Sequence record: KT919973.1
Direction: 5' to 3' (one strand)
Length of the DNA stretch: 64,000 nt
Under the pieces are notes generated by a model, which worked only from the letters and a program-made list of their open reading frames with translations, was not told the DNA's origin and ran no database searches. Position numbers and translations under genes: made by a program. Below are positions 12,932-50,656 of this stretch, piece by piece (within the stretch, counting starts at the first letter, position 1; each line of letters opens with the position of its first letter).

Positions 12932-13819
12932 ATGATTATATTCGAGGGATATGACGCGCTATTTGAAGCGTTTGATAGAGCAGCGAATTATGACTGGCTG
13001 ACCGACGACGAAGCGTTTTTTGAAATCGGCGGGACTATGTATAAAGCAATCATAACTAGCAAAGATGAAGCACGCGGACGCATAATTGACGTTTCATTTA
13101 TGTGGAAAAGACCAGATGGTCAGTATTCATATGAATTAAAGAAATCGAGCAACGCGAAAGATTCATTGATGGTAATGAGTACGGTGCTTGCAGCTACGTT
13201 TGACAAGGCTAAACGAGAAAACCCAGATTACATTACATTCAGCGCATTTGCAGACCATGACGACAGAGATGCAAAGAAACGCTATAATCTTTATAAGCGC
13301 ATGGCTGAACGATACGCAAAGCAGATGGACTATACTTTACAAACGCACGGGCGTATGTTTGTATTAAAAAACAACAACCCATCTAATGAAATTAGACGAC
13401 TACCAAATGATGGTATTAAAGTCGAAGATGAGATCACATATGTTGATTTCCCTAGAGTGAACGCATTCACATGGGCGACGCTATTTGAGTGTGAACGACC
13501 TGGTGATTTTGAATTGATTCGTATGACAAATGGGTTCGCTACAATCAAACGAGTTAATGATAAAACAGTTCAAATTAAAGCATCAATCAATGGTAATAAA
13601 TTTGATAATTTAGACACGGTTGAAATATGGGAAAGTCTGCTAGGTACTATTATTGCTAAACCTGCATGGGGTGGTGATGGAGAAGCTGAATTACTAGAGA
13701 AGGGCGCGATTCTAGAAGATGGTAAAATGCTGATTCTTGACTACAACACACTTTACATGGTTGAAAAGGTAAGCGACTTTGAAGAAGTTTGGGGTCATAG
13801 TCTTATTAGAGTTGAATAA
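12932..13819 (+). CDS. putative internal head protein, paralog of the 48401/48859/49781 family
   Basis: late promoter; N-terminus MIIFEGYDALFE-AFDR; shared domain STV..ITFSAF.D..KRYNLYKRMAERYA. Confidence 0.7.
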   Translation: MIIFEGYDALFEAFDRAANYDWLTDDEAFFEIGGTMYKAIITSKDEARGRIIDVSFMWKRPDGQYSYELKKSSNAKDSLMVMSTVLAATFDKAKRENPDYITFSAFADHDDRDAKKRYNLYKRMAERYAKQMDYTLQTHGRMFVLKNNNPSNEIRRLPNDGIKVEDEITYVDFPRVNAFTWATLFECERPGDFELIRMTNGFATIKRVNDKTVQIKASINGNKFDNLDTVEIWESLLGTIIAKPAWGGDGEAELLEKGAILEDGKMLILDYNTLYMVEKVSDFEEVWGHSLIRVE

Positions 13820-13845
13820 AAAAGGGAGCAAATTGCTCCCTTTTT
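13820..13845. terminator. bidirectional terminator
   Basis: AAAAAGGGAGC-AAATT-GCTCCCTTTTT between convergent genes. Confidence 0.8.
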
Positions 13846-13848
13846 CGA

Positions 13849-15477
13849 TCATGGTGTTAGAGGACTACGCTCTTTTGTTAGTCTATCTGCATCGATATCT
13901 ACATCAACAGAACGCATGAAATTGGCTACTTCTGAAAGCTCGTGTAAACGCTCTTGCTTTTTGAAAGCAGACAATACACCTTGCTTCGTATCTTCTTTGA
14001 TTTTCAATCGAATTACAGCGTCGTATTCAGACATTTGAACAACGTCAGCTTCAAACATCGTATTACGGTTGATGATAATCTCTTTTGAGTATTTCATACC
14101 GTGTTTACCTGAAGCTAAAACAGGCAAGCCGCTCGCTTCTATGATGAATACAACATTCATTTTCTTATCTGACTCAAGCAGAGAACGCATATCTGATTTA
14201 CTATTCTTAGCAGTTGAATCAATGATGTTCTTAGAGCTTGATTCAACGAACTTACAAGCAACAAGAGGGTCGATTGACGTTGAGATAAACGCAGTCGAAA
14301 CAAACGAGCCAGATTCAAGAATAGAGCGCACATGTTTACTTGACATTTCACAGCCACGATATAACGTCATTCCACCAGCAATCATACCAGCTTCAGAAAA
14401 CGCTTGGTCGATGCGTGAGACAATCTGTGATTCTTTATCAACACCCGTTCCGTGTAATAACTCTTCATTCACCTTCCATGAAAAACGAGTCGCGGAGTAT
14501 CTAGCAATAGCAGCTTGTGTAAGTGACGATAGACCCGCAAATGAATCTTCCTGCATAAGTTGCAAAGAAAGACGTTCATACTGACTTGCATGAGCACGTG
14601 AGCGAGATTCCATGATACTATTCAGAACGCTTTGAGGCTTCTTCGATTCGGCGATATATGAATTCAATGAAACTGCCACAGTTTCAAGATTCAAACTCAT
14701 ATCAATTAAACCTTTCGCAGCATTAGCAAGAACATGTTCATTGCTTTCATTCAATTGAGAACGAACAGACGAACTTACACGCGCTTCATATTGAGGCATT
14801 TGAAGAACATCATTTGGAACACGTGCAGCGGGGTTTTCTTCTACCCATTTACCTAGTACGTCATCTTCATAGTCGTCATACGCAGCATCGGCAGTTACGA
14901 TAATCGTTTTCTTGCTTGAAATATCAGTTTCGAGTGACATTTTTAACGCAATATCGTTAATTGTTTCTTCAGATGCTTCGAATAGCTTATCGGCATTATA
15001 CCCTGGTTTGGTTACAATAAAGAAGCTGTAATCTTGCGAAATTTCTTCACCACCCACGCCAATGATCTTAGTTGTATCACAGCCGTAACGTAGCTTTTTA
15101 AACAACGTTTTAACGCGCAAGTCGAACATCTTACCCGTACCTAGTTTCTGCACACGCATTGAAACGACATTCGCACGACGTTTGATCATGAAATCTTGAA
15201 CCACTTTAACAATAGTTTGTTGAAGCTTTTGTTCATCTCCCATTTCACGAATAGTAACACCGCCTTTTTTGCCGCGCATTGCTGATACAGTACAGAACCA
15301 CGCACGTTTACCGCGATTTCCGATATCTGATTTTGTTTTAGTTGTGAACGAAACAACGATGTCTCTGGCTTCGCCTTTCATGTCGATCACAAAGAATTTG
15401 TTTTCTTTGGTCGAGCGAGCCGGATAATAGTCGTACGTTGCGCTCATGTTTTCATTTAATTGTTGAAATCCAATCAT
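13849..15477 (-). CDS. alt: Alt-like ADP-ribosyltransferase (virion protein)
   Basis: C-terminal ART motifs LYRG, FISTS, YSKEII; N-terminus MIGFQQLNE; CATAAATA late-like promoter upstream on the minus strand. Confidence 0.8.
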   Translation of the reverse strand: MIGFQQLNENMSATYDYYPARSTKENKFFVIDMKGEARDIVVSFTTKTKSDIGNRGKRAWFCTVSAMRGKKGGVTIREMGDEQKLQQTIVKVVQDFMIKRRANVVSMRVQKLGTGKMFDLRVKTLFKKLRYGCDTTKIIGVGGEEISQDYSFFIVTKPGYNADKLFEASEETINDIALKMSLETDISSKKTIIVTADAAYDDYEDDVLGKWVEENPAARVPNDVLQMPQYEARVSSSVRSQLNESNEHVLANAAKGLIDMSLNLETVAVSLNSYIAESKKPQSVLNSIMESRSRAHASQYERLSLQLMQEDSFAGLSSLTQAAIARYSATRFSWKVNEELLHGTGVDKESQIVSRIDQAFSEAGMIAGGMTLYRGCEMSSKHVRSILESGSFVSTAFISTSIDPLVACKFVESSSKNIIDSTAKNSKSDMRSLLESDKKMNVVFIIEASGLPVLASGKHGMKYSKEIIINRNTMFEADVVQMSEYDAVIRLKIKEDTKQGVLSAFKKQERLHELSEVANFMRSVDVDIDADRLTKERSPLTP

Positions 15478-15568
15478 TTTTATAGACTCACCCTTTAGAA
15501 ATATATGTGTATTTATGATTGCTCATAACACCCGTTGAAATTATTTTAAACTTTTTGTCAGAAAAAGG

Positions 15569-15612
15569 TTGCTTTGTTTTCGTTTTAACCATATTATAGC
15601 TTCATCGAAACG
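15569..15612 (+). promoter_or_regulatory. early sigma70 promoter
   Basis: TTGCTT..TATTAT followed by the shared AGCT..ATCGAAACGA leader. Confidence 0.7.
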
Positions 15613-15636
15613 AATTAACGAACAGAGAGAATAATT

Positions 15637-16143
15637 ATGAATGTACAATCACTGACTAACGAACAACTTGCAGCACGTTACAACATGACAGTAGACTCAA
15701 ACGGCTTTCAAGCTGTTGATGATAAAGGTCGTCGTCATTATCTAACAGACTTGCGTCAGAAAGCGATGAAAGAAGCTAAGACGAAACGTACTTCAAAAGT
15801 TAAAGCAGCGGCAAGCAAAATCGCTTTACCAACCGCAGAAGAGAACTTAGCGCGTCTGAACGGTGATTTTACTGAACATCAATGGTTTATTCGTGAATCT
15901 CAGCCGGGTCTTGATATTGAAGAATTAGGTCTGCGATTCTACTTTATTGGTGGTCACGAACGTCATCAATTGAACATTCGTACAAAGCACTTCAGTAACA
16001 AAGAGTTGAATAACTTTTACGCTGACAAAAAGATTCTGAAAGCTCACAAAGGTACAGGTTCAATCACAATCGGTTCTCTGAGTTATGATGAAGTAGTCGA
16101 AATTGCTAACGATATCATCGAAAAGAGCAAAAACGAGATCTAA
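15637..16143 (+). CDS. hypothetical early protein
   Basis: GAGAG RBS after early promoter. Confidence 0.75.
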   Translation: MNVQSLTNEQLAARYNMTVDSNGFQAVDDKGRRHYLTDLRQKAMKEAKTKRTSKVKAAASKIALPTAEENLARLNGDFTEHQWFIRESQPGLDIEELGLRFYFIGGHERHQLNIRTKHFSNKELNNFYADKKILKAHKGTGSITIGSLSYDEVVEIANDIIEKSKNEI

Positions 16144-16165
16144 ATCACGAAAAAAGTAGTTTTAG

Positions 16166-16198
16166 GGATTGACAATAACACGTCAATCCCCGATAATA
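16166..16198 (+). promoter_or_regulatory. early promoter with hairpin over the -35
   Basis: GGGATTGAC-AATAACAC-GTCAATCCC; TTGACA-N17-GATAAT. Confidence 0.7.
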
Positions 16199-16241
16199 AA
16201 CACATCAAGACGAGATACGAACTACTTAAAGAGAGAACATT

Positions 16242-17069
16242 ATGACAATCACTAAAGCAGAAATGAAAGCTATCGCAATCGACCTTATGTCTGGTAACAA
16301 CTTGATGAAGCGCGATCTGATTGCAGAAGGTTGGTCATTCGAATTTTCAAAACGTAAAGCTGCACTAGGTGATTGTAACTACCGTACTAAAACACTACGT
16401 CTTTCTGAAAAATTCTTGAACGCTCGTACTAAAGAAGAGCAAATCAACACAATCACTCACGAAATGGCTCATGCGATTGCTTACACTGATTACAACGAAC
16501 GTGGTCACGGTGCTATCTGGAAGCGTGTACACCGTCAACTAGGTGGCGATGCAAAGCGTTGCTCAACTGTATCTAACCCTGATGCTGTAGATAGCAAGTA
16601 CGTTGTTTTCTTCGAAAACGCTCAAGGTGAACTTGAAGTAGTTCAGAAAATGGATCGTTTGACTAAGCGTTTTCAACCAGTACACATCAAGGCTCTATAC
16701 TTGAAAGGTCGTAAAGCTGAAACTGAAGGTCAACTTCGTTGCGTTGCAACATCAACATTCAACGCTATCAAAGCAGATCACGAAGCTAAGAAAGCTGAAA
16801 ATACTAAAGCAGTTGAACCTGTAGCAGCACCTGCACCGAAAGCTGAAAAGAAAGCTGAAGCGCCTAAGCCTGCTAAGAAAGTAAACGCACGTGGTCAAGC
16901 TGCTCGTGACGCAATCGCAGAAATCGTAATGAATACTACTCACAAAGGTTGTAAGTCAGTGTCATTTGAACAGCGTGGTAAATACAAAGATTGGTACATC
17001 ATTATTGAACTAGAAGCTCACACAATCGAAAAGCGTCTAGACACTTTCAAAAAATCTCACGGTTTATAA
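16242..17069 (+). CDS. SprT-like zinc metalloprotease with Ala/Lys/Pro-rich linker
   Basis: LGDCNY, THEMAH, GHG..WK, G..AKRC SprT motifs. Confidence 0.85.
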   Translation: MTITKAEMKAIAIDLMSGNNLMKRDLIAEGWSFEFSKRKAALGDCNYRTKTLRLSEKFLNARTKEEQINTITHEMAHAIAYTDYNERGHGAIWKRVHRQLGGDAKRCSTVSNPDAVDSKYVVFFENAQGELEVVQKMDRLTKRFQPVHIKALYLKGRKAETEGQLRCVATSTFNAIKADHEAKKAENTKAVEPVAAPAPKAEKKAEAPKPAKKVNARGQAARDAIAEIVMNTTHKGCKSVSFEQRGKYKDWYIIIELEAHTIEKRLDTFKKSHGL

Positions 17070-17087
17070 CATTGTTGTTCTCTTTAT

Positions 17088-17110
17088 AGCCCCGAAAGGG
17101 GCTTTTTTTT
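17088..17110 (+). terminator. intrinsic terminator
   Basis: AGCCCC-GAAA-GGGGCT followed by T run. Confidence 0.85.
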
Positions 17111-17234: not shown

Positions 17235-17474
17235 ATGATAACGATATACACAATTCCCAACTGTGACGGCTGTCGTCACGCAATTTCCCTCTGTAAGTTC
17301 AAAAACGTCCCGTACACTGTAATAGAGTTACAGTCTCAATCTGATATCGATAAATTGCATGAGAAACTTGGTGGGGTGCGCAACATTCGCGTGCCTCTTG
17401 CTATGCATGGTGATACATACATAGGTCATCTTCCAGAACTCAAGCAATGGGTTGATAACCAGACATATAAATAA
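17235..17474 (+). CDS. glutaredoxin (NrdH/NrdC-like)
   Basis: TIYTIPNCDGC CxxC motif, VP..YIG. Confidence 0.88.
   Translation: MITIYTIPNCDGCRHAISLCKFKNVPYTVIELQSQSDIDKLHEKLGGVRNIRVPLAMHGDTYIGHLPELKQWVDNQTYK
17466..17473 (+). promoter_or_regulatory. late promoter
   Basis: exact TATAAATA upstream of the gp24-like gene. Confidence 0.85.
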
Positions 17475-17529: not shown

Positions 17530-18429
17530 ATGACTGTATCTAATAGTAACGGTTTACCAGACATTGTTTCTGTTCAAAAACGACTATACCCGTTAATATT
17601 TACGCAAATCGTTTCAGAACAGCCAACAACTCAACCGGTTGCGACTGCGTTCGGTTTCAAATCTGTAGCTGAAGCTGATGACGCGAGTGGGTGGCTGCCA
17701 CATGGTTTTAGACTTGATCGCTGGTATGCACAAGTTCAATCATCAAAGCTAAAAACTGAAATCTCACTTGAAACAATTCAAGACATGCAAGCACTTGGTG
17801 TCAATGAATCGATTATCACAGATTCTATTGCTGATCAAATCGCAGATGACATCAACACTAATATCATCGATGCACTAAACAGTATTTCAACTGTTGGTAG
17901 TGCAATTACGCTATCTGCTATTACTAACCGTTTTGATAAAGGTCGAGAATTATACTCGTTCGTCCATGCATCTGCTGCTGAGATTGAAAAGTCAACGGGT
18001 TGTACAGGTACATATATCGTAGCAGGTGGTGAAGCATTTGGTCTATTGACGGGCACTGGTATGGCTACACAGATTGGTGATACTAGCATGTATAAATGTG
18101 ACTCTGGGTTATATCTAGTTCATGACAAGTATGCAACGACTGACTACGTAACAATTGGTGTTAAGAAAGAACTTGGTGATTATGAAATCTCAAGTTTAGT
18201 ATTCAGCCCATACAACTTTGACAAAGCAACAGACGCTGGTATTGCATATCAATATAAAACACAAGACTCAAAATCATTCCACCCAATTTACGGTGTGATT
18301 GCTCGATACGCATTGACCGTTGCACCATTAGAAGATAATCAAACGGGTGCAGTTGAAATCGATTGGGATAATCTTGGTGTTCTTGCGAACAGTTCTAAGC
18401 TGTCATACACTCACGCAGTAACGGTATAA
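17530..18429 (+). CDS. 24: capsid vertex protein (gp23/gp24 family, short form)
   Basis: IFTQIVSEQPTTQPVATAFGF, SSKLKTEISLETIQD, ARYAL match the gp23/24 pattern; late promoter. Confidence 0.8.
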   Translation: MTVSNSNGLPDIVSVQKRLYPLIFTQIVSEQPTTQPVATAFGFKSVAEADDASGWLPHGFRLDRWYAQVQSSKLKTEISLETIQDMQALGVNESIITDSIADQIADDINTNIIDALNSISTVGSAITLSAITNRFDKGRELYSFVHASAAEIEKSTGCTGTYIVAGGEAFGLLTGTGMATQIGDTSMYKCDSGLYLVHDKYATTDYVTIGVKKELGDYEISSLVFSPYNFDKATDAGIAYQYKTQDSKSFHPIYGVIARYALTVAPLEDNQTGAVEIDWDNLGVLANSSKLSYTHAVTV

Positions 18430-18437
18430 GGTGTGAC

Positions 18438-18959: not shown

Positions 18960-20405
18960 ATGTTAGGTAACTTTGACTCATTTCTGAGTGAAAATCGCCG
19001 TCAAACTCAGGGTGGTAAAATCTACCCTAAGTTTGGTCAAGTTATTGTTGAGCTAGGCACTGCATCTACTGAGTTCAGCAAAGGCAAAGGCGTTGAAACA
19101 ACTATCGGCATGATGGAAAAGGCAAATGAGCTTAAATCTATCATGAGTACTAAACTTGCTGAAGATAAAAACGTCGATGAGAAAAACTTCGATATCAATC
19201 TGAGCGAGAACGTAAGCACAATCAACTTGCTTATGGAAAACGAATTCTTATCATTGCCAGCACATGAGCTACAGCAAGTTAAGTCTATGATCATGTGTAC
19301 TGAAGCGCGTCTTCCTAGCATCGTGATTAAAGGCGGTTACTTAGATCAAGTTGTTGCTGAAGCGACTAAGCTTGGTTATAAGAAAAATGACATTCACGTT
19401 GTTTTCCCTATGCGTGAAATGAAAATTAATCTTGCTGATTCTGATAAGCTTGTAATTGAATCGCTATCAATCGACGACAATTCAGCCTCCGAAGTACTGT
19501 CAATGGCTGAAAACATCGAGCTTGGTGACGTTTATGTGACTGTTGAATCGGTTGATTCAAAAGCCGAACTGTCTGACATCACTGAGATGAAAATCAAGTC
19601 TGGTAAAAATGCACTTACATTGGCTGCACTGAACCGTAAAATCATGGACTTGTTCATTGTAAAAGAAGCGAAAGACGTATCATACGCTCGTGAACGTAAA
19701 GACGATACTGGCTTGCCGATGCTAGAAGGCTTCAAAGCATACGATCTGAAACAGAACATCACCATGATTGAACATGCTCAGAACGTTTTCACGAAAGAAA
19801 TCGCGACTGCGCCACTGACATCGACTGCATGGCAAAATCTTGTTGATGTGAAAGAAGCGTATTTTGACAACGGTTGGAAGCTGAAACACAACAACACAAG
19901 TATTGTTCTAACAAACGCGGAACATGCTATGCGTGCAAGTCGTACGTGTTATGAATACCGTGTTGAACTGTCTGAAGCTGGTTACCCGCTTCTTGATATG
20001 ATTGCGATGATGGAACGTAAAGGCGTGAAACGTTTTGACTGTAAAGCATTTGCTGAAGCTATGCTATCGTTCGATGGTTGTGTTACCCCTGAGCGTCAAA
20101 CAGTGACTGCATTTTCAACAATGGCTGAGTCGAATCGTGTATTCCACCCGAATATCATGTCTAGTCTACGTCCAGTGACTGAAATGGTTGATGATGTTGA
20201 TTCACTGATTCGTGCTCTTGCAAATGATCAGTTCAGTTCATTCAAGGTTGGTCAATCTTTCTCTGAAGCGATGCTTGATCAAGAAACACTTTACTCGATG
20301 ATGGAAAACATCGTTGAAAACGGCGTTGACGTTTCGGTTGACGGTACTTTGATTGAGTTCAGCGTTAACGCAACGAACTATCTGATTGATATTGATATTA
20401 AGTAG
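18960..20405 (+). CDS. putative internal head protein, possibly a degenerate P-loop kinase
   Basis: N-terminus MLGNFDSFLSE; GGKIYPKFGQV..GKG, KLGYKKNDIHVV; function inferred only. Confidence 0.55.
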   Translation: MLGNFDSFLSENRRQTQGGKIYPKFGQVIVELGTASTEFSKGKGVETTIGMMEKANELKSIMSTKLAEDKNVDEKNFDINLSENVSTINLLMENEFLSLPAHELQQVKSMIMCTEARLPSIVIKGGYLDQVVAEATKLGYKKNDIHVVFPMREMKINLADSDKLVIESLSIDDNSASEVLSMAENIELGDVYVTVESVDSKAELSDITEMKIKSGKNALTLAALNRKIMDLFIVKEAKDVSYARERKDDTGLPMLEGFKAYDLKQNITMIEHAQNVFTKEIATAPLTSTAWQNLVDVKEAYFDNGWKLKHNNTSIVLTNAEHAMRASRTCYEYRVELSEAGYPLLDMIAMMERKGVKRFDCKAFAEAMLSFDGCVTPERQTVTAFSTMAESNRVFHPNIMSSLRPVTEMVDDVDSLIRALANDQFSSFKVGQSFSEAMLDQETLYSMMENIVENGVDVSVDGTLIEFSVNATNYLIDIDIK

Positions 20406-20412: not shown

Positions 20413-21060
20413 ATGAAGCAATTTGGTGAATTTTTAACTGAAGTACAAAAGTACAGTTCCGCAGCAACGTCGATACGTGGTAAAGAAGTAGCAGCACTGG
20501 TTAAACTATACAAGAAAGGTATGTTTACACCGGGTGGTACTGCTCTTGACTATGGTGCTGGTAAATACGGTCGTAACGCTGAATTTTTACGCTCTGAAGG
20601 CATCAAAACGTATGCATATGACAAATTCAATGGTACATCTGCTGATGGTTGGACTGATGTCAGTCTGACTATCCCAAATGGGGAATCATTCGATACGGCG
20701 TTTACTTCTTACGTACTGAACGTTGTACCTGAAGAAGTCGAAGCAGAGATTATTCGTGATGTTGAGTCTCGTGCTCGTGGTAAAGTTTTCCATATCACTC
20801 GCGGTACTGACATTACTCAAACTGTGTTGAACGTGATCAGTGGTAAAAGCAAAAACGATATCATGATGCAATTCATTGCTCAAGAATATCCAGATCTGTC
20901 TATGCAGATTGAAGCAGGTAATGCAACAAGAGACGTGGCTAAAGAAATTGCTACTCGCGGTGTAGTTACAGCGAAAGACAGCTTTCAACGTATTCCAGAC
21001 CTTTCAAAGTACGGTTACAAGAAATCTGGTTCAGGTGCTTCGGTAGTTTGGACAAAATAA
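20413..21060 (+). CDS. class I SAM-dependent methyltransferase with capsid-targeting-like N-terminus
   Basis: ALDYGAGKYGR motif I, YAYD, FDTAFTSYVLNV; starts MKQFGEFLTE. Confidence 0.75.
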   Translation: MKQFGEFLTEVQKYSSAATSIRGKEVAALVKLYKKGMFTPGGTALDYGAGKYGRNAEFLRSEGIKTYAYDKFNGTSADGWTDVSLTIPNGESFDTAFTSYVLNVVPEEVEAEIIRDVESRARGKVFHITRGTDITQTVLNVISGKSKNDIMMQFIAQEYPDLSMQIEAGNATRDVAKEIATRGVVTAKDSFQRIPDLSKYGYKKSGSGASVVWTK

Positions 21061-29169: not shown

Positions 29170-29661
29170 ATGGACATCTTTGAATTCCTAGCGAAAGGCG
29201 AAGAAACTGAAGCGAGAATCGCTGAAGAAGAAAAAGAATACGAAGAAGAGCTGAAGAAAGCGAAGAAAGCAGAGAAATATTCACCGTTTGATTTCGTTGA
29301 CAGTATCTACATGAAGAAACGTTTACCAGATGCTGTTGTTGATGAGCAATATCTACCATTTATGGTGAATCGCGCATTGAGCAACGGCATCGATACAGTT
29401 CTTCATGCGTATATCATGGATTCGGTTGGTAGTAAGTTACCGAATGAAATGCAATATGATTATTTGTATCATGCAGTTCGTAAAGGTAAGCGATTCAATT
29501 CATGGGCAAAAGAACCGAAATATGACTATGTTGATCTAATTGTTGAGGTATACAACGTCAATAAATCACATGCAATTAGTATTTCAAATCGTCTAACGCC
29601 CGAAGAGTTGAATCAATTACAAGAATGGTACGACTCACGAACGGGGGGCTTAACACGCTAA
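29170..29661 (+). CDS. 62: clamp loader small subunit
   Basis: YLPFMVNRALS..QYDYLYHAVRKGKRF. Confidence 0.9.
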   Translation: MDIFEFLAKGEETEARIAEEEKEYEEELKKAKKAEKYSPFDFVDSIYMKKRLPDAVVDEQYLPFMVNRALSNGIDTVLHAYIMDSVGSKLPNEMQYDYLYHAVRKGKRFNSWAKEPKYDYVDLIVEVYNVNKSHAISISNRLTPEELNQLQEWYDSRTGGLTR

Positions 29662-30242
29662 ACAGAATCGGGTTTATGTTTGCAGTTGTCATTGTGCCAA
29701 CGTTTGATAGTTGCGGCATTCTTTGAAGATTTGCCGCAATGAATACAAACTGAAATTGGTCTCTCATCCCAACTGTCGCTAATCTTTTTCTTTACATCGC
29801 GTGTTCTCTCAACTCCTTTGAATGTAGACGGTACACCCTTTCGATTACTAGGCTTCCCGACTTTAGCATCACTGAGCTTTTGTTTATGTTCATTGCTCTT
29901 GGGCTTGCCTTTAAGAGAGTCTGAAATATTTCGGCGAGTTGTTTCGGAACGTTTAGTTCCCTTTACACTACCGCCTTCGCCGCCTATTTTGAGATTATAG
30001 GTGTTTTTACTACTTACAAAATTTTCGTTCACTATCAGAGATTCGTATTCATATGCGTCTTCTTCGCAGTCGAACGTTTTTAAAATTATCTTTGTGAAAT
30101 TATCAACACCGTATTTATCAATTGAGCGAAATATAATCTTTCCAGAACCCATGTAACCGTCGTCGATGTTATTCGTTGAGTGTTTACCAATATAAACTTT
30201 ATTGTTTATGTTGTTTATTATTTTATATACGATATGAAACAT
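29658..30242 (-). mobile_element. free-standing GIY-YIG (Seg-like) homing endonuclease with NUMOD3-like repeats
   Basis: IVYKIINNINNKVYIGKH..YMGSG..YN...GG; basic ETRRNISDSLKGK-type repeats; start trimmed to MFHIVYK. Confidence 0.88.
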
Positions 30243-30264: not shown

Positions 30265-30276
30265 TATTTATAAATA
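30265..30276. promoter_or_regulatory. palindromic bidirectional late promoter
   Basis: TATTTATAAATA contains TATAAATA on both strands, between the endonuclease and regA. Confidence 0.7.
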
Positions 30277-30307: not shown

Positions 30308-30691
30308 ATGGCAGATTACATTAACAAACTTGAAATTCAATTACCAGACGACGATGCATTTCTAAAAATTCGCGAGACTTTAACGCGAATTGGCATCGCC
30401 AATAACAAAACAAATACTCTATATCAATCGTGCCATATTCTTCAGAAACGTGGCGTGTATTTTCTAGTTCACTTTAAAGAGCTTCTAGCACTTGACGGTC
30501 GATGTGTAGAAATTACTGACGAAGATATTGAACGTCGTAATAACATTGCCAAGTTACTTGAAGACTGGAATCTATGTAAAATCGCGCACCCTGAGTCGCA
30601 CGAATTTACTGGCGATAATAAGTTTCGCGTGATCTCGTTCCGCGATTCTAAAAACTGGAATCTACGATACAAGTATAAGATAGGTGCATAA
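30308..30691 (+). CDS. regA: translational repressor RegA
   Basis: FLKIRETLTRIGIAN..LYQSCHILQKRG.Y..VHFKELL. Confidence 0.97.
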   Translation: MADYINKLEIQLPDDDAFLKIRETLTRIGIANNKTNTLYQSCHILQKRGVYFLVHFKELLALDGRCVEITDEDIERRNNIAKLLEDWNLCKIAHPESHEFTGDNKFRVISFRDSKNWNLRYKYKIGA

Positions 30692-31128
30692 TGAAAACTT
30701 ACACTGAATTTTTGAGCGAATATCACATGCAACACCGAGCGCCGTCACCTCCTGATGACAGCCCTCTGTACGATATCTCATTGACGGGAACATTCCCTGA
30801 AGATGTATACGAAGCGAACGGTCTACGATGGTACGGCAATCACAATGATCGCGATGAGCGCGAGGCGTATCAAATCATCAAACGCTGTCACGGAAACCCG
30901 AATGCGAAAGTTAAAATCTATCGCGCATGTCCCGAGCACGTCAGCGTAATCAACTCAGGCGATTGGGTTACGATTGTCGAGAATTATGCAAAATCGCATC
31001 AAGAGTCTCGCGACTATTCAAGTGAAATTTCAAACGACGATGAGCGTTATCATGTGATCAGTCAAGTTGTACTTGCTAAACAACTCTTCACCGAGGGATA
31101 TTTCCTTGAGTGGGGATACGTTAAGTAG
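30691..31128 (+). CDS. putative internal head protein, ADP-ribosyltransferase-like fold
   Basis: MKTYTEFLSE targeting-like peptide; VKIYRA, GDWVT..YA..H, EWGY. Confidence 0.6.
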   Translation: MKTYTEFLSEYHMQHRAPSPPDDSPLYDISLTGTFPEDVYEANGLRWYGNHNDRDEREAYQIIKRCHGNPNAKVKIYRACPEHVSVINSGDWVTIVENYAKSHQESRDYSSEISNDDERYHVISQVVLAKQLFTEGYFLEWGYVK

Positions 31129-38354: not shown

Positions 38355-38906
38355 ATGATTGAAACATTAGTAACAGTAGCAGCAATCTTGTTTGTGTTGT
38401 TTGTCATTTACATGTACAAGCGTGCCTCAGACAAACAAAAAGCAGAAAATGCGAAGTCGATGCGTGAACAAGCAAGCCCTGACATTCTCGGCAATCTGCG
38501 TGAGCGTGATGCACAAGAACTACGTTCGTTGAACGGTACGTCAAGCAATGCAAAATCTCGTGTGACTCACTCAGTGCGTCATAACGTACCAAAAACTCAA
38601 TCACAGTCGCGTACGTCTCGTAAGCGCCGTGAAGATGATGACATTGTGACGAACCCACTGCATCCCTTAAACCCGATTACTGACCCTGTAGGTCTGTATT
38701 CAGATGACGAGCCAGCACGCTCACGACCTGAACCAAGCTACTCTGCTCCTGAGCCGAGTTACAGCGAACCAGAGCGCGTGTCTAGCCCGGGTAGTTACTC
38801 ATTCGGTGGTAGTTCTGACAGCTCTTCAAGCTACTCAAGTTCGAGTGATAGTGGTTCAAGCTACTCAAGCAGCGATAGCAGTTCTGGTGGTGGGAGCTTT
38901 GACTAA
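38355..38906 (+). CDS. membrane-anchored protein with Ser/Gly-rich low-complexity tail
   Basis: N-terminal TM helix; SSSYSSSSDSGSSYSSSDSSSGGGSFD tail. Confidence 0.7.
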   Translation: MIETLVTVAAILFVLFVIYMYKRASDKQKAENAKSMREQASPDILGNLRERDAQELRSLNGTSSNAKSRVTHSVRHNVPKTQSQSRTSRKRREDDDIVTNPLHPLNPITDPVGLYSDDEPARSRPEPSYSAPEPSYSEPERVSSPGSYSFGGSSDSSSSYSSSSDSGSSYSSSDSSSGGGSFD

Positions 38907-39418
38907 TGATTGTATCTGAGATTCGTGGCGATTTAGTCGCCACTCTCGCTCACGCGATTGAAAACCCTAATCATCAACGTACGTTTATCATGGGGCAAGG
39001 TTGTAACTGTTTTATCAGACAAGGTGCAGGTATTGCAGGTCAATTACGACGTTTCCCCGAAGTTTACCAAGCTGATATCGACTTCGGTCGTAGCGGTGAC
39101 CCACTGAAGCTAGGTGAATACTCGGTTGCGTTGTTTGATGACCACGGAACTGTCCCTCAAGCTGTTGTGTTTAACATGTACACACAGTTCAGCATGGGTA
39201 CGAAAGAGAGACACGCTGAATACTCTGCAATTGCTGAATCTGTGCGTGGTATCGTTCGCTATCTTGAAGGCAATGACGATAAAATCTACTTACCTCTTAT
39301 TGGTGCGGGTCTAGCGGGTGGTGATTGGGAAATTATTCGTGATATCATCGACCGTGCAAGCGGTAGTAAAGAAATCGTTATTGTTCATTTTGAAGAAGAT
39401 AAATTAATCGACTGGTGA
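38906..39418 (+). CDS. macrodomain ADP-ribosylhydrolase (T4 Tk.4-like)
   Basis: EIRGDL, GCNC..QGAGIA, NMYTQ, LPLIGAGLAGGDW. Confidence 0.88.
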   Translation: MIVSEIRGDLVATLAHAIENPNHQRTFIMGQGCNCFIRQGAGIAGQLRRFPEVYQADIDFGRSGDPLKLGEYSVALFDDHGTVPQAVVFNMYTQFSMGTKERHAEYSAIAESVRGIVRYLEGNDDKIYLPLIGAGLAGGDWEIIRDIIDRASGSKEIVIVHFEEDKLIDW

Positions 39419-40394: not shown

Positions 40395-40467
40395 TTAAAT
40401 CCCGTCGGTTAAGACGGGATTTTTTGTTTTGTCTAAATAGAAGAAACAACATTAAAAGGTTAATTAA

Positions 40468-41919
40468 ATGAAACAATTTAACGAATTTTATCAAGAAGTT
40501 CGCCTTGATGAGATTTCTGATCGTGCGAATATCGACATTGATTGGGATTGGGGTCATGAGAACGGGACGGGCGAGACTTCAGCGAGATTCGACGCTGCTG
40601 GTGAGCGATTTGAAGTTGGTGTTGAAGAAAGCAACCCTGGTTATTTCACTATTACATTCCAAAACTCAGGTGGTTATGCTCAGACAGGTAAAGCAGGACA
40701 CTCTGCGGCTGCGGTATTCTCTGGTGTATTGACGACTCTACGTGAATTCACCGAGACGTATGAAGAAGAAATGGGCATGAAGCCGTATGAATATGACTTC
40801 AGCGCAGCTTATGAACTACCAAAGAATCACGAGTACTACGCACTTGTTAACAATCGACGCGAAGCGACTCGTTTAGATGAAGAAAGCAAGAAGAAGCTAT
40901 TGAAAGACTTGATTTCTCGTCCGATGCTTTACTACGCTCTATCGTTGACGTTTGGTAAAGAATACGGCTATTCGACTGACATTAGCGACCGTTGGCTTGC
41001 ACGTCTAGCAGGCGGTGCAAACGATTTCCGCTCTGTTCGTAAGAACGTGACGCGCAGTATTCTTTCAATGAGCGACAGCGACGTTAACCAAGCGTTGATG
41101 AGCATGAGTGGTTCTGTCTCTTTCACACTTACTAACGAGAACGAGCGTGCTAGTAGCTACGATACAGCATTCGGTGGCGGACCGTCTCTTGAAGATTTTG
41201 TTGATGAAGCAGATCAATATCAAATCGAAGCATGGATCAATGAAGGTCGTGAAGATGAAATCATTGAACACGCAGATTGGCAAACTCTAGTTCGTATTGC
41301 TAGTTGGGGTCTGATGCACGAAGAGCTGATTTTCCACGATGACGAAGACGTTCGTGCAGCGGTAGTTGAGTCAGATTACGAAATGGGCGATAAACTTGCT
41401 TCATCTGGCGATTGGCAACACCGTAAACAAGCTGCGGACATGGGTTTTGGTATTTGGGATCTTGTTCTTGACTCAGATGAAGATGTACGGGACACAGCGT
41501 GGGATTGGTCATTCTCAAACGACGATGCAGACACACGTATCACATATGCGAAACGCTACGAAAGTGAATTCGGTCGCGATATGGCAGAAGATATCTGGGA
41601 TAGAATGATCGATGATACAGATGATTACGAAGAACGCCAATACGTAGCCGAACAAGGTTATCGAGTTGAGGAACTTCTAGCAGACCATGATGAAGACGTG
41701 CGCGAATCTGCAATTGGTGCGGTATTTAACGTACTGGGGTTAGATGGTCGCGAAGCTGCTGAGTTCTTGATGAATAACTCAGATCCATATCAAGAAGAGG
41801 TGTTTGAATACGCTATAAATGGTAACTTCGGTCCGTCATTTGATGAAGCACTTATTGAGCTTGCTGAAGAAAACGGCGTTGATGTATCTGAGTACAAAGA
41901 CGACGAAGACGAAGAATAA
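40468..41919 (+). CDS. putative internal head protein with HEAT-like repeats
   Basis: MKQFNEFYQE start, CTAAATA upstream, three D(D/S/H)DEDVR repeats. Confidence 0.7.
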   Translation: MKQFNEFYQEVRLDEISDRANIDIDWDWGHENGTGETSARFDAAGERFEVGVEESNPGYFTITFQNSGGYAQTGKAGHSAAAVFSGVLTTLREFTETYEEEMGMKPYEYDFSAAYELPKNHEYYALVNNRREATRLDEESKKKLLKDLISRPMLYYALSLTFGKEYGYSTDISDRWLARLAGGANDFRSVRKNVTRSILSMSDSDVNQALMSMSGSVSFTLTNENERASSYDTAFGGGPSLEDFVDEADQYQIEAWINEGREDEIIEHADWQTLVRIASWGLMHEELIFHDDEDVRAAVVESDYEMGDKLASSGDWQHRKQAADMGFGIWDLVLDSDEDVRDTAWDWSFSNDDADTRITYAKRYESEFGRDMAEDIWDRMIDDTDDYEERQYVAEQGYRVEELLADHDEDVRESAIGAVFNVLGLDGREAAEFLMNNSDPYQEEVFEYAINGNFGPSFDEALIELAEENGVDVSEYKDDEDEE

Positions 41920-43945: not shown

Positions 43946-43970
43946 AAAAAGGGGCGAAAGCCCCTTTTTA
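43945..43970. terminator. bidirectional terminator
   Basis: AAAAAAGGGGC-GAAA-GCCCCTTTTT between convergent genes. Confidence 0.85.
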
Positions 43971-45023
43971 TGGTCGGTAGATCATATGATTAGAACCCAT
44001 TCGTTCCCATGACCCTAGATTCATACGATTACGCATTTCAGCGAATAATGCTGAGTTTGCTCGTATATCATCAAGTGGTAGCGCAACTACACCTTCAGTT
44101 TTATGTGCCAGTAATTCAAGTTTATCTAGCAAATCGCTAGAATTCCGACCGTCGTATTTAAACTGACTGAACCAATAACCAATCTTACTAAACTTCTTAT
44201 CTCTGGTGTATCTCACATCAAACCCTTTCAATGCATACATCAAGCTGCTTTCTTTACCTTTAAACGGTTGTCTCGACTCACTGTGTTCAGCCCCTGCACG
44301 CGAAATCAATCGTTTCTTAGACTCTTCTGGTATATTGTCCCACCCATCAAAGTTGTGTTTAAATCGATTAATCCATGCTTGAGCAGTGGCTGGTGAATTT
44401 TTAAAATCTGCTTTAGTATCTGCAATCGCTTGTGCATAACGAGCGTTTATCTCGTGCGAATAGTTCTGATATTCGTCGTGTGTCGCTTTGTGACCTGCTT
44501 TAGCATGTCGAATGAACTCTTTATCGATATAAGCTCTATTACGCCCTGAGTGTTGATATACACCCTCTTCGTCGCGTGTCTCGAAGTCTTCTATATCACC
44601 AGAACGCCAGTTATCATAAGCATGTTGAAGTTCATGTAATGTAGTGCTGTACATCTGTTCTTTCTCGACTCTAAACTTAGCCATAATCTGACTCACCGCA
44701 GTGACACCGGTTATATCAACGGTGATTTGCAAGTTCCCTGCTTCACCTGCTTCTGGGTCGTGTAAAGCACCGCGCCAAACACCCATTTCGGTTGGGTTTT
44801 GGTTATCAAGTTTAAGATAAGCAACGATACCACGCGCAAGAAGCGCATCGAACTCAGTTTCACCAGTTTTGATGTTCAGATTCTTGGTATTGAGCGCGAG
44901 TTTGTTTGGGTCGAATGGTCGGCTACTTAGAGCTGCTTCTAATTGTGTCTCAAGCTTATCGACAATAAACTTAGATGCGTACTCTAATGCACGCTGCGAT
45001 TGAACGTTTTCAAAAATAATCAT
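43968..45023 (-). CDS. putative virion zincin metallopeptidase
   Basis: LHELQHAYD HExxH plus YSHEINAR third-ligand motif; CTAAATA upstream on the minus strand. Confidence 0.7.
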   Translation of the reverse strand: MIIFENVQSQRALEYASKFIVDKLETQLEAALSSRPFDPNKLALNTKNLNIKTGETEFDALLARGIVAYLKLDNQNPTEMGVWRGALHDPEAGEAGNLQITVDITGVTAVSQIMAKFRVEKEQMYSTTLHELQHAYDNWRSGDIEDFETRDEEGVYQHSGRNRAYIDKEFIRHAKAGHKATHDEYQNYSHEINARYAQAIADTKADFKNSPATAQAWINRFKHNFDGWDNIPEESKKRLISRAGAEHSESRQPFKGKESSLMYALKGFDVRYTRDKKFSKIGYWFSQFKYDGRNSSDLLDKLELLAHKTEGVVALPLDDIRANSALFAEMRNRMNLGSWERMGSNHMIYRP

Positions 45024-45100
45024 CTTTTTTCTCGAATTCGGTTGACTGTATTACTTATTTAGGTTAATATCTATCGCATCGAAACGAAAGAGAGAACACT

Positions 45101-45796: not shown

Positions 45797-45798
45797 TC

Positions 45799-46191: not shown

Positions 46192-46195
46192 TCTC

Positions 46196-47048: not shown

Positions 47049-47054
47049 AAAGAT

Positions 47055-47102
47055 TGTGAAACTAGTTTAATATCAACGACATGATGCTATACTAGTTTCA
47101 CA
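47055..47102. repeat. 12-bp inverted repeat overlapping an extended -10 promoter
   Basis: TGTGAAACTAGT-N24-ACTAGTTTCACA; TGCTATACT overlaps the right arm. Confidence 0.7.
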
Positions 47103-47177
47103 TTGCAGCGATGTACTGCAATTCACGTCTGGTTAGGTTGTACAGATAAAAATAAAACTTAAAAATATAGGTATAAA

Positions 47178-47306
47178 ATGAAAAAACTTTGGCTTTCATT
47201 AGCATTGTTATGTTCTACTGCGTCAACGACAGCGGCTACATTCACGGGACTACCGGCTGAAGGTGTCAAAACACCGAGTCCTTTAATTAAAGAGTCGCCA
47301 CTCTAA
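47178..47306 (+). CDS. 42 aa putative secreted peptide (absent from the ORF track)
   Basis: MKKLWLSLALLCSTASTTA-ATFTGLPAEGVKTPSPLIKESPL; AGGT RBS; signal-peptide-like. Confidence 0.55.
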   Translation: MKKLWLSLALLCSTASTTAATFTGLPAEGVKTPSPLIKESPL

Positions 47307-47318
47307 AACGAGGTTATT

Positions 47319-47498
47319 ATGAGAAAGCATGAAATACGAGATATGGTTGAACGTCAAGGGTTCATTCTGAACGAAGAAATTGACGAACACAATCAATCAC
47401 TCTGGCAGATAAAAGACAACGGTCAAGTTGTTTACGAATCGTATAATGAATATTGCCTTGAGGCATTTCTCAAAGGTGTTAGATATTCAGAACAGTAA
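47319..47498 (+). CDS. 59 aa hypothetical protein (absent from the ORF track)
   Basis: GAGGT RBS, MRKHEIRDMVERQGF... Confidence 0.6.
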   Translation: MRKHEIRDMVERQGFILNEEIDEHNQSLWQIKDNGQVVYESYNEYCLEAFLKGVRYSEQ

Positions 47499-47527
47499 GC
47501 GCCTTTATGGCGCTTTTTGAGGTTATT

Positions 47528-47833
47528 ATGAGACGACAAATCAATAGAATGAAAAACGATAATGGTGATTTCGAGCGTTATATGCGCACGCAAGCAGCTA
47601 GATACGCTCGAAGAGAGATCATCAACAATATAGCCGATGACAATGACATCTTCTTAGTCGGTTCTTACACGATGTACAAAGATTGTGATGAAAAGGTTGT
47701 TCTTCAGCTTGTACGATACGCAGGTTACGAGCGTGCTGAAGTTAAAGCAGTGCCGATTGTCGGTAGTCTTGTTGATTGTGTTAATGTCATTCACGGTGTT
47801 GGGTTTAGAGTGGTGCTAAATAATGATAGTTAA
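47528..47833 (+). CDS. hypothetical protein
   Basis: GAGGT RBS then ATG at 47528. Confidence 0.65.
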   Translation: MRRQINRMKNDNGDFERYMRTQAARYARREIINNIADDNDIFLVGSYTMYKDCDEKVVLQLVRYAGYERAEVKAVPIVGSLVDCVNVIHGVGFRVVLNNDS

Positions 47834-48107
47834 CATTGCTCATCATTCTTTTGATGTGTACATTGGTCGCGGCACCCCGTTTGGGAACCCATTTAAATCA
47901 GGGATTGACGGTACTCGAAGCGAAGTTATTGAGCTTTATCGCGAGTGGTTACGCATTCAATTACAAGACGACGAATTTAAAAAGCAGTTTATGCAACTAA
48001 AAGGAAAGATTCTCGCCTGTCATTGTAAGCCTAAAGCGTGTCATGGTGATGTAATATTAGAAGAACTTGATAGATTGAGCAGCCCATTAAACAATTTTAT
48101 AGGTTAA
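47823..48107 (+). CDS. DUF4326-family protein
   Basis: DVYIGRGTPFGNPF..LKGKILACHCKPKACHGDV. Confidence 0.8.
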   Translation: MIVNIAHHSFDVYIGRGTPFGNPFKSGIDGTRSEVIELYREWLRIQLQDDEFKKQFMQLKGKILACHCKPKACHGDVILEELDRLSSPLNNFIG

Positions 48108-48110
48108 TCT

Positions 48111-48404
48111 ATGAGAGAAGCAATTGCATTATTGAAAAACACGAAGATGAGTTATACGGACATTAGCGCATTCGGCGACCCCGTAGTATATGTTCATGCA
48201 GGCCATGAAACGATTTTAAAGGTAGAATACACTGAAGATTGCTACTCATTTTTCGATTACAGAAGCAAGTATCTCTATACTGAACAGTCAATCGACGACT
48301 TAGAAATACATTTAAAATCAATAGATGTCGGTCTTGATGATGATCTACCATTGAATGGTAATATCGACAAAGACACGATACCAGACGGGGAATTTTTAGA
48401 GTGA
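48111..48404 (+). CDS. hypothetical protein
   Basis: AGGT RBS, 97 aa. Confidence 0.65.
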   Translation: MREAIALLKNTKMSYTDISAFGDPVVYVHAGHETILKVEYTEDCYSFFDYRSKYLYTEQSIDDLEIHLKSIDVGLDDDLPLNGNIDKDTIPDGEFLE

Positions 48405-48850
48405 AATTTAGCGAATATCAAAACGAGCTAACAGAAGCATTTGATCGACCAGCACAGATCACAGCACGACGTGGCAATAAGAGCTTTTTTAACGTCGGTG
48501 ACAAACGTTACATCGTCGAACTCGCATATGAAGAATACGATAAATCTATAAATGTTGAGTTTATGTATATGTCCCCAGAATCACCAACATGGAGCTATAA
48601 TCTCGCGAAAGGCGATGCTAGAGACGCGATTACAGTTTTTGCAACTGTTATATCTGAAATTGAAGAATTAATGCGTAGCAAAGATGTAAATTATATACAT
48701 TTCAACGCATTTAGCGATTCGAACGCGGATGATTATCGTAAGAGACTTAGTGTATACAAACGTATTGCAAAACGATTTGCTGATGAACTTGGGTTTAAGG
48801 TTGTGTATGACATGGGTTCTATTTCACTTGAAAGATTGGATAAAAGGTAG
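48401..48850 (+). CDS. putative internal head protein paralog 1
   Basis: MKFSEYQNELTE-AFDRP; shared family domain only. Confidence 0.7.
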   Translation: MKFSEYQNELTEAFDRPAQITARRGNKSFFNVGDKRYIVELAYEEYDKSINVEFMYMSPESPTWSYNLAKGDARDAITVFATVISEIEELMRSKDVNYIHFNAFSDSNADDYRKRLSVYKRIAKRFADELGFKVVYDMGSISLERLDKR

Positions 48851-48858
48851 AGTTTAAA

Positions 48859-49779
48859 ATGAAATTTAGCGAATATCAAAGACTCAACGAGTCGTTAGAT
48901 CGACCAGCGAAATATAAACTCGTCCGAGAGTTACCAAATTTAAACGTGTATGCGTTTCAAGTTGATGGTGTTTATTATGAAATAGACATACAGAAAGGCA
49001 TTATACGTGAACCGAACGGGATGAAGTCGATTAAGGCTGAGGTGTCGTTCAAAGCTCTTGATGGTAGCGGTTATAATCTAACTAAGAAAGATGATAAAAC
49101 AGCACGAGTCGTATTATCAACGGTTGTCGATGCGATTTTCAGTTTTGTTAGAGACAATTCACCTGCTCAAATAACATATAGCGCGTTCAATGACGCTGAT
49201 CAGCGTGATGCAGATAAACGTCTCAGACTGTATAAGATCATGACAAAGGCGAAACTTAGAGAATTCCCTCAGTATGATTACAGAAACGTAGGTCGTGAAT
49301 TTATTGTGTATGATGTGGGTTATCAACAACGTGTAGATGACTTTTCACGTCGAGCACGTCGTCCAGTCGGGTTTGAAGAACATAGCGACCATGTTGAAGT
49401 TAATTTATCTCACGCCAATGCATATGCATTTGTAAGAGCGTTTGAAGTTGAAGATGGTTCGATGATTAGTGGTGTTCTAGGGCAAGGTCGTGCAGTTGTA
49501 AAAGCGGCTGACGAAATTGCAGCTAGGTTACGTGTAAATCGCGTTGTGTATGAAATGTCGGACAGGGAAGGTTGGTTAGCAGCACTACAGCACCCAATTT
49601 TCGACTATGGCGAGGGTCCCGAAGAAGATAGAACATATCTGGTTGGTGCATTCAAGAACTTCTATATCGTCTTGACTAGTCAAACAAGTCTAAAAATATA
49701 CACCGACGATGCGGCGTTTACCAAATACGTGAATGCATTCGACGCGCCGTGGTTAAACCCAGAAATAATGGAATCTTAA
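48859..49779 (+). CDS. putative internal head protein paralog 2
   Basis: MKFSEYQRLNE-SLDRP; family domain plus C-terminal domain. Confidence 0.7.
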   Translation: MKFSEYQRLNESLDRPAKYKLVRELPNLNVYAFQVDGVYYEIDIQKGIIREPNGMKSIKAEVSFKALDGSGYNLTKKDDKTARVVLSTVVDAIFSFVRDNSPAQITYSAFNDADQRDADKRLRLYKIMTKAKLREFPQYDYRNVGREFIVYDVGYQQRVDDFSRRARRPVGFEEHSDHVEVNLSHANAYAFVRAFEVEDGSMISGVLGQGRAVVKAADEIAARLRVNRVVYEMSDREGWLAALQHPIFDYGEGPEEDRTYLVGAFKNFYIVLTSQTSLKIYTDDAAFTKYVNAFDAPWLNPEIMES

Positions 49780-49780
49780 A

Positions 49781-50656
49781 ATGAAATTTAGCGAATATCA
49801 AAACGAACTAACAGAAGCGTTTAACCGCGCTGCACCCATAACAGCACGACGTGGTAATCAGAGTTACTTCGAAATAGACGGCGCTGAGTATATGATTGGT
49901 CTGTATTATGAAGAAGATCGCAAAGCTCTAGGCGTGGATTTTATGCATAAGCCAACGGGTGCAATGTCTTACAATTACAGCCTAGCAAAGGGTGATTCTA
50001 AAGACGCGATGACTGTTTTCGCCACGGTTATTTCTGAAATTAAGCACGTGATGCAAAACAACATCGTAAATCGAATCACATTCGCAGCATTTAATGACAC
50101 AAATCGTTCTGATTCCCGTAAGCGTACTCGATTATACAAAAGAATGGCTGAACGATTTGCCAAAGATTTAGGTTTCAAATTGAGAGTATCAAATGAATCT
50201 GAAGGTGCGTCATTCGTGATGGAACGAATCGTTCCTATTGAAGACCCAAAGCCTGTTTACACTGATAACCCGACTGGTTATGATACAGAAATGGGAACTG
50301 AATTGCTCGATTTACCTACAATTAACGACGCTGCTATTGTTAAAGTAACGGGTGGTGATGGTATTTGGTATCTTCGTGGCGGTCACTCGTTAAACATCGA
50401 AGCTGGTATTGTTGAACTTTCGGCAGGTAGCATCAATGATGATGTTGCTTGGTATAAATCATTTTACACGTTAGAGTGGTATTATGAACCTGAAGACGAG
50501 CTTTTCTACGATGATGAGCAACGTATAGCAATGATTTCTGGTAAGATCTGGGTAATCAATGGAAATGAGATCACCGTTTGGAGTGATGTTAGTTCTCTTG
50601 AAGCCCAAAGTGATTCGAAATTGAGTCAAACAACGTTAGAACGAATTGGTGCTTAA
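49781..50656 (+). CDS. putative internal head protein paralog 3
   Basis: MKFSEYQNELTE-AFNRA; family domain plus C-terminal domain. Confidence 0.7.
   Translation: MKFSEYQNELTEAFNRAAPITARRGNQSYFEIDGAEYMIGLYYEEDRKALGVDFMHKPTGAMSYNYSLAKGDSKDAMTVFATVISEIKHVMQNNIVNRITFAAFNDTNRSDSRKRTRLYKRMAERFAKDLGFKLRVSNESEGASFVMERIVPIEDPKPVYTDNPTGYDTEMGTELLDLPTINDAAIVKVTGGDGIWYLRGGHSLNIEAGIVELSAGSINDDVAWYKSFYTLEWYYEPEDELFYDDEQRIAMISGKIWVINGNEITVWSDVSSLEAQSDSKLSQTTLERIGA

Follow-up and report, generated by a model that had tools for sequence, protein, structure and literature searches.

T4-type capsid-targeting peptides predicted on unrelated proteins of Vibrio phage phi-ST2

The 64,000-nucleotide (nt) stretch analyzed here (the window) comes from Vibrio phage phi-ST2 and covers positions 186486 to 250485 of record KT919973.1. 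A window coordinate equals the record coordinate minus 186485. The phage is KVP40-like and belongs to Schizotequatrovirus, Straboviridae. Four unrelated window proteins, encoded by open reading frames (ORFs) that start at 30691, 20413, 40468, and 18960, and an Alt-like ADP-ribosyltransferase (ART) begin with a short peptide resembling the capsid-targeting sequence (CTS) of T4. We favor the reading, with some reserve, that these five carry a T4-type N-terminal capsid-targeting propeptide and are packaged, cleaved, and ejected as in T4. phi-ST2 probably delivers a wider set of premade proteins than T4 does, because several unrelated proteins bear the tag that T4 uses for head loading.

The CTS, its use on unrelated cargo, and its diversity in T4 relatives are already established. 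Head-packaged enzymes are also established as an idea (PMC9503650). An earlier note on this DNA, made from the letters alone, knew of no description of such a system. That overstated the novelty, as a T4 review already reports diverse CTS-bearing proteins in related phages (PMC9026906). The new elements are a concrete set of candidates in KVP40-like phages and two broader enzyme families that bear the tag. CTS-like ORFs are mentioned neither in the paper on the phi-ST2 genome nor in a review of genomes related to T4; this coverage does not extend to Miller et al. (2003) on the KVP40 genome.

The N-terminal peptide and the late-promoter motifs

The earlier note listed ten genes as starting with a short peptide that contains an aromatic residue and ends in Glu. 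All ten ORFs are present, with the N-terminal letters and coordinates quoted there; the Alt peptide is present from a longer start only. They group as 30691, 20413, 40468, and 18960; the paralogues 12932, 48401, 48859, and 49781; Alt alone; and 45023 (minus strand) alone. The T4-type peptide is found on the first group and on Alt. The rest have different N-termini and weaker evidence, and the claim of one common peptide does not extend to them. A general rule of this kind is not specific. [LI]xE ends at residues 5 to 14 in 24 of the 107 window proteins, compared with 13.6% of internal control windows.

The core [FY]xxF[LIY]xE is common to 30691, 20413, 40468, and 18960. It occurs five times in the 19,927 residues of the 107 window proteins, and four of the five occurrences are N-terminal. 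No relationship among the cargo bodies of these four was found by blastp. Positions 4 and 7 are hydrophobic or aromatic in 30691, 20413, and 40468, and in 18960 with a shift of one residue. This position-4/7 form was not found in Alt, 45023, or the paralogue family. L/I-x-E ends the peptide in 30691, 20413, 18960, Alt, 12932, 48401, 48859, and 49781. Identity to the T4 IpIII peptide ranges from 5 to 7 of 10 residues across the candidate CTS peptides.

The earlier note had proposed a motif scan of the full genome. All possible starts of ORFs of at least 50 amino acids (aa) were scored against residues 1 to 10 of T4 IpIII, and six pieces of the record were scanned separately. The T4 reference peptides were translated from ipIII and ipII in record AF158101.6, which was reached as a named match of a denV search. 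The top 4 of 4818 starts were 30691, an ORF at record position 101936 (minus strand), 20413, and 40468, with scores of 35, 33, 23, and 21. None of the 79,439 non-start positions scored above their maximum of 27, whereas the top two starts reached 35 and 33. The scan therefore returned three of the listed ORFs and a small one outside the window.

Two simpler detectors were rejected. A loose regular expression (aromatic, then hydrophobic-x-E) was dropped because 111 of 1713 starts matched it. A four-position pattern gave 4 matches among 6098 starts, where about 3 were expected by chance (our own rough estimate from assumed residue frequencies). We changed to scoring against the T4 peptide because this pattern was not clearly above chance.

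Three further loci outside the window were noticed. The ORF at record 101697 to 101936 (minus strand) lies in the tRNA cluster and encodes 80 aa. It starts MKTFDEFITE, which is identical to T4 IpIII at 7 of 10 residues, and has ACTAAATA 35 nt upstream. The annotation contains only a 46-aa coding sequence from a downstream start. Its placement mirrors that of T4 ipI beside tRNA genes. An unannotated ORF at record 95181 to 95387 (minus strand) encodes a Lys/Ala-rich protein of 68 aa with a pI of 10.1. It starts MSDKTFDKFMSE, has TCTAAATA 37 nt upstream, and looks like a classical basic internal protein. Near the head module (record 153623 to 155139, minus strand), phiST2_0235 starts MIEFLTE with TCTAAATA at -30, and phiST2_0234 starts MSIIFE.

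The KVP40 and nt-1 orthologues of 20413 and 40468 keep residues 1, 2, 4, 7, 8, and 10 of the peptide. Residues 3, 5, 6, and 9 are variable. In the T4 IpIII peptide, residues 4 and 7 serve mainly for targeting, and residues 8 and 10 serve for processing (review of Black's work, PMC9026906). The positions conserved in the orthologues coincide with those that T4 genetics marks as functional. The peptide is shifted by one residue in more distant orthologues of 18960 and 40468, yet the spacing within F-x-x-F-[LY]-x-E is the same there.

The shared letters could also come from constraint on the nucleotides, such as A+T-rich starts or shared 5' cassettes, with no protein signal. Many phi-ST2 genes do start MK or MI, and one paper describes T4-type phages as shuffling genes via conserved regulatory cassettes (PMC2839356). 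However, the four 30-nt segments share only 18 to 21 of 30 nt, and identical residues in the four peptides are encoded by different codons. The residues that are conserved are the functional ones of T4, the one-residue insertions retain the spacing, and the peptide terminates in a protease motif. We regard an origin at the nucleotide level as very improbable and retain the reading of a protein signal.

The genes for gp67, gp68, gp21, gp22, and gp23 are all annotated in phi-ST2. Its gp21 is 49% identical to T4 gp21. The maturation site of T4 gp23, around residue 65, aligns with L-N-E followed by A in phi-ST2 gp23; the T4 gp23 propeptide is 65 residues long (PMC9026906). L-I-E and L-L-E are retained at the N-termini of phi-ST2 gp21 and gp22.

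Late-promoter motifs sit at all of the positions given in the earlier note (Table 1). The whole record contains 16 TATAAATA sites, 14 of which lie 28 to 64 nt upstream of gene starts. The genes downstream of these 14 sites include regA and 12932 as well as gp22, gp23, gp24, gp25, wac, gp18, and three homing-endonuclease genes. NCTAAATA forms another motif class. It lies ahead of gp48, gp4, gp19, inh, and a tail-fibre gene, and also ahead of 40468, 45023, and the two small candidate CTS ORFs outside the window. The octamer TCTAAATA also precedes gp48, gp19, and inh, and CATAAATA also precedes another tail-fibre gene. As motifs only, TATAAATA, CATAAATA, or NCTAAATA is present 31 to 40 nt upstream of 12932, Alt, 40468, and 45023. 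In phage 1.081.O, where the corresponding proteins are 40 to 47% identical, 12932, Alt, and 45023 retain both the motif and its spacing. The genes for gp24, gp55, 18960, and 20413 follow one another with intergenic gaps of 7 to 9 nt.

Two homing-endonuclease genes of the window, one seg-like (29658 to 30242, minus strand) and one mob-like (53824 to 54525, minus strand), have an exact TATAAATA just upstream of each. At 30265 to 30276, two overlapping TATAAATA-type motifs point in opposite directions, one toward the seg-like gene and the other toward regA.

Predicted cargo proteins

Table 1. Proteins and late-promoter motifs considered here, in window coordinates. CTS assignments are predictions.
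Feature	Position	Strand	Remarks
145-aa protein, MKTYTEFLSE	30691..31128	+	Closest candidate CTS match, 7/10 identical to T4 IpIII
215-aa S-adenosylmethionine (SAM) methyltransferase-family protein, MKQFGEFLTE	20413..21060	+	Canonical candidate CTS
481-aa protein, MLGNFDSFLSE (11-residue candidate CTS variant)	18960..20405	+	Degenerate zeta-toxin-like P-loop domain
483-aa acidic (pI 4.2) helical-repeat-like protein, MKQFNEFYQE	40468..41919	+	Canonical candidate CTS
Alt-like ART, 542 aa from longer start, MIGFQQLNE	13849..15477	-	PF03496, phrog_802
295-aa paralogue (phrog_6387), MIIFE...L-x-E, then AFDR	12932..13819	+	Adjoins Alt
149-aa short paralogue, GTG start, MKFSEYQNELTE, then AFDR	48401..48850	+	Family comparison
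306-aa paralogue, MKFSEYQRLNE, then SLDR	48859..49779	+	Family comparison
291-aa paralogue, MKFSEYQNELTE, then AFNR	49781..50656	+	Family comparison
351-aa protein, HELQH and HEINAR, N-terminus MIIFE	43968..45023	-	Motifs invariant in 18 sequences
TATAAATA	12901..12908	+	31 nt before 12932 start; after hairpin ending ligase gene; at -30 in 1.081.O
CATAAATA	15510..15517	-	40 nt before long Alt start; motif and distance same in 1.081.O
TATAAATA	17466..17473	+	Before gp24
TATAAATA	30269..30276	+	39 nt before regA
TCTAAATA	40432..40439	+	36 nt before 40468; after terminator-like hairpin
CCTAAATA	45056..45063	-	40 nt before 45023 start; TCTAAATA at -39 in 1.081.O

Searches of Pfam and PHROGs with the ten proteins assigned a function to Alt only. 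No significant PDB match came from sequence searches that used 20413, 18960, 40468, or either of two family profiles.

The 30691 ORF overlaps the regA stop codon. Its body (residues 8 to 143) is 33 to 35% identical to proteins of about 129 aa from Mycobacterium, Gordonia, and Rhodococcus phages. The one actinophage homologue that was read (129 aa, from a mycobacteriophage) begins at the body and does not contain the CTS peptide. No orthologue was found at the syntenic places in KVP40, nt-1, or 1.081.O. This patchy, modular presence resembles that of the variable ip genes of T-even phages. The earlier note counted two ART-like proteins, of which Alt stands. Nothing supports an ART in 30691. Pfam and fold searches gave no ART signal, and the label was dropped because the AlphaFold model was poor (predicted local distance difference test [pLDDT] of 63) and had no fold match.

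The 20413 family has 233 homologues. Of the 32 members aligned, 27 match PF13489 (Methyltransf_23), which agrees with the methyltransferase label given earlier. The 20413 protein itself falls below the Pfam threshold, but its homology to other members reaches 1.2e-29 among the matches listed. It keeps motif I (D-x-G-x-G) as LDYGAGKYG, together with the residues that are invariant across the family. In 92 of the 113 family members with a body anchor, [LIFMVY]xE ends at residues 5 to 16, compared with 27% of control windows. A few members start at the body. Two members were looked up. Both were in T4-like phage contigs, and one was between tail and terminase genes.

The 18960 protein has a C-terminal extension of about 280 residues. 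Its N-terminal domain has relatives in T4-like phages of Klebsiella, Enterobacter, Cronobacter, and Aeromonas. Eight of 11 relatives match Zeta_toxin (PF06414) and contain an intact Walker A, GGAGSGKG. These zeta-toxin-like relatives begin with CTS-like peptides, one of which closely resembles T4 IpI. The 18960 protein and two close orthologues have no PF06414 match, and their P-loop is degenerate. It is therefore a diverged and probably inactive zeta-toxin-like relative. The pseudo-kinase label fits both the matches of the relatives and the degenerate P-loop of the phi-ST2 clade.

The 40468 protein has a sub-threshold HEAT match in Pfam, and one relative is annotated as armadillo-like. The HEAT label agrees with these two observations and found no further support.

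Alt matches PF03496 with 23.6 bits against a cut-off of 23.4, and phrog_802 with 4e-88. Both bear out its ART label. Judged by its sequence context, 15477 is a better start than the annotated one 30 nt downstream, because an SD-like (Shine-Dalgarno-like) GGGTGAG precedes it and the KVP40 and nt-1 records use the same start. The longer start is also used in 1.081.O, and MIG[FY]QQL[NT]E is conserved in all three phages. T4 Alt is packaged and has a short propeptide cleaved by gp21. The phi-ST2 protein resembles it in its ART domain, in adjoining the DNA ligase gene, and in its short peptide ending in L-x-E. It differs in having 542 rather than 682 aa, an unrelated N-terminal region, and only 22% identity in the ART core (over 140 aa).

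Other genes of the window were noticed beside these. A SIR2-family protein is encoded at 4323 to 5084 (plus strand), and relatives of the protein at 38906 to 39418 (plus strand) are annotated as macro domain proteins. Together with Alt and NAD-salvage genes elsewhere in the record, they make up a large NAD/ADP-ribose gene set. The region from 52178 to 60468 (plus strand) contains a cluster of queF-like, folE, queD-like, and queC genes, a small DNA methyltransferase gene, and genes for two large hypothetical proteins. This 7-deazaguanine/queuosine-type cluster suggests a modified-base pathway.

The paralogue family and the HExxH protein

Sequence comparison among the ten proteins confirmed a four-member family, as the earlier note had proposed. 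12932, 48401, 48859, and 49781 are paralogues, and their common N-terminus is therefore a single observation. phiST2_0234 is a fifth member. It contains the domain in its C-terminal half and lies near head genes. For 12932, the L and E of L-x-E are invariant in KVP40, nt-1, and 1.081.O, and the middle residue is variable.

The 45023 protein has I-F-E at residues 3 to 5 and A-L-E at residues 12 to 14. Its model (pLDDT of 84) contains a confident helix at residues 7 to 33. The 14-residue peptide quoted earlier enters this helix, and only residues 1 to 6 (MIIFE) are coil. On this model a cut after E5 would therefore be conceivable, and a cut after E14 would be unlikely. The model had no significant PDB match (best E value of 0.76). 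A BFVD search with it retrieved uncharacterised phage proteins, with weak SprT-like and polyvalent-protein-domain matches. Some relatives of the protein are fused to Nudix. The earlier zincin label is in keeping with the invariant HELQH and HEINAR, and no fold match was added to them.

A second signal, shorter than the T4-type peptide and far less certain, may serve the paralogue family and the HExxH protein; it would read MIIFE or MKFSEYQ...L-x-E. Their conserved N-terminus may instead be just the element with which the fold begins, in ordinary cytoplasmic proteins that stay unpackaged. The loose motif occurs often, in 24 of the 107 window proteins against 13.6% of control windows. The A-L-E of 45023 lies inside its confident helix. 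In the 48401-50656 group, the N-terminus leads directly into the conserved AFDR block, the family L-x-E sits within a conserved block, and the conserved N-terminus could be part of the fold. The genes 48401, 48859, and 49781 are in an early-looking operon and have no late motif directly upstream; the nearest is GCTAAATA at 47815. These points weigh against a signal. On the other side, the late motifs of 12932 and 45023, with their spacing, are kept in the 40 to 47% identical relative. L and E are invariant, whereas the residue between them varies (F, C, V, D, T, or N). The record contains II[FY]E six times, and in four of these it comes right after the initiator Met, with one Ser between in phiST2_0234. 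12932 also adjoins Alt. We hold the structural reading to be quite plausible for these five proteins, though we stop short of adopting it.

Predicted delivery and its alternatives

If the peptide works as in T4, the tagged genes would be transcribed late. The peptide would dock each protein onto the gp22 scaffolding core as the prohead forms. The gp21 homologue would then cleave after the Glu of L/I-x-E. The trimmed protein would remain in the DNA-filled head and would exit with the DNA at the next infection. The proteins predicted to travel this way are Alt (an ART), the SAM methyltransferase, the zeta-toxin-like kinase (catalytically degenerate), the acidic protein with helical repeats, and the small domain that actinophages also have. 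We infer docking, packaging, cleavage, retention, and ejection from the comparison with T4; injection, action before phage transcription, and any effector role are predicted in the same way.

The closest known system is that of T4 IpI, IpII, and IpIII. It shares with phi-ST2 a peptide of 10 to 11 residues that starts MK and has an aromatic residue at position 4, Phe at 7, L/I at 8, and Glu at 10. In both phages the bodies are unrelated and some of the genes are accessory, and the small phi-ST2 CTS ORF is in a tRNA region like T4 ipI. However, the phi-ST2 cargo is 145 to 483 aa long, mostly acidic, and enzyme-like, whereas the T4 proteins are small and basic. There is no homology between the bodies. 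The phi-ST2 genes are dispersed among replication genes, and packaging of their products is a prediction.

Two other systems bear comparison. In the giant phages phiKZ and SPN3US, a gp21-related protease cleaves many head-internal proteins after Glu at S/A-x-E, and paralogue families have conserved N-termini in common (PMC5694885). Most of these propeptides exceed 100 residues, and their motif is another one, whereas those predicted in phi-ST2 are short and T4-type. In the polyvalent and MuF virion effectors (Iyer, Aravind), enzymes such as ARTs, peptidases, and Nudix are also packed and delivered with the DNA (PMC9503650). The Nudix fusions of some 45023 relatives and the weak polyvalent-domain matches of 45023 are points of likeness. 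In phi-ST2, however, the predicted cargo consists of separate genes with a short cleavable tag and not of domains of a giant fusion.

Several observations weigh against delivery by a T4-type propeptide. The 40468 peptide ends in Y-Q-E and has Tyr instead of Leu/Ile at P3. The 18960 orthologue of 1.081.O (locus L018, 8813 to 10255) has FLSA where phi-ST2 has FLSE, with Ala for Glu at P1. If the peptide is a protease site, that copy would therefore stay uncut. The phi-ST2 gp24 (17530 to 18429, plus strand) has about 130 residues fewer than that of T4, and its start lies past the position of the 10-residue propeptide of T4. It lacks this propeptide, and head maturation is therefore not identical to that of T4. 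Most of the cargo proteins are acidic, in contrast to the basic T4 internal proteins. No individual promoter motif precedes 20413, 18960, or 30691, which would need read-through from gp24 or regA. The searchable literature gave no data on the virion composition or N-termini of any KVP40-like phage, and no transcript data were found. The KVP40 record separately remarks on a possible internal deletion in gp24.

The proteins might also be targeted to the prohead and act there, as core, scaffold-accessory, or DNA-packing components that are later degraded or inert, without being injected. T4 assembly proteins use the same N-terminal logic, and IpIII affects head morphogenesis (PMC9026906). The degenerate P-loop of 18960 suggests a noncatalytic role, 40468 looks like a helical-repeat scaffold, and the phi-ST2 head is larger and longer than that of T4. 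However, the methyltransferase keeps D-x-G-x-G and the family-wide invariant residues, and T4 Alt is an injected enzyme (T4 annotation; PMC9026906). 30691 is an accessory gene that is absent in close relatives, unlike an assembly component. A role confined to the prohead appears unlikely to us, and packaging followed by ejection remains the preferred reading for Alt and the four proteins with the core motif.

A wider reading is possible but doubtful. T4-superfamily phages in many hosts would routinely pack enzymes behind short gp21-cleavable tags, and these enzymes would act on molecules of the host or the phage on entry, before phage genes are read. The set of the phi-ST2 lineage would be unusually large, with about ten tagged proteins in the window and several elsewhere in the genome. 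Two families would be candidates under this reading. One is the SAM methyltransferase family, with over 200 members that come mainly from uncultured phages, and the second is the zeta-toxin-like kinase family of Klebsiella, Enterobacter, Cronobacter, and Aeromonas phages.

The analysis corrects the phi-ST2 record at the Alt start codon and at two missed small ORFs. It also gives labels to about ten hypothetical proteins of a phage group considered for aquaculture. If particle proteomics confirms the prediction, T4-like phages would be known to deliver several enzyme classes with their DNA and not just Alt and a few small inhibitors. If the prediction is true, the short tag would allow delivered proteins to be predicted straight from phage genomes and metagenomes.

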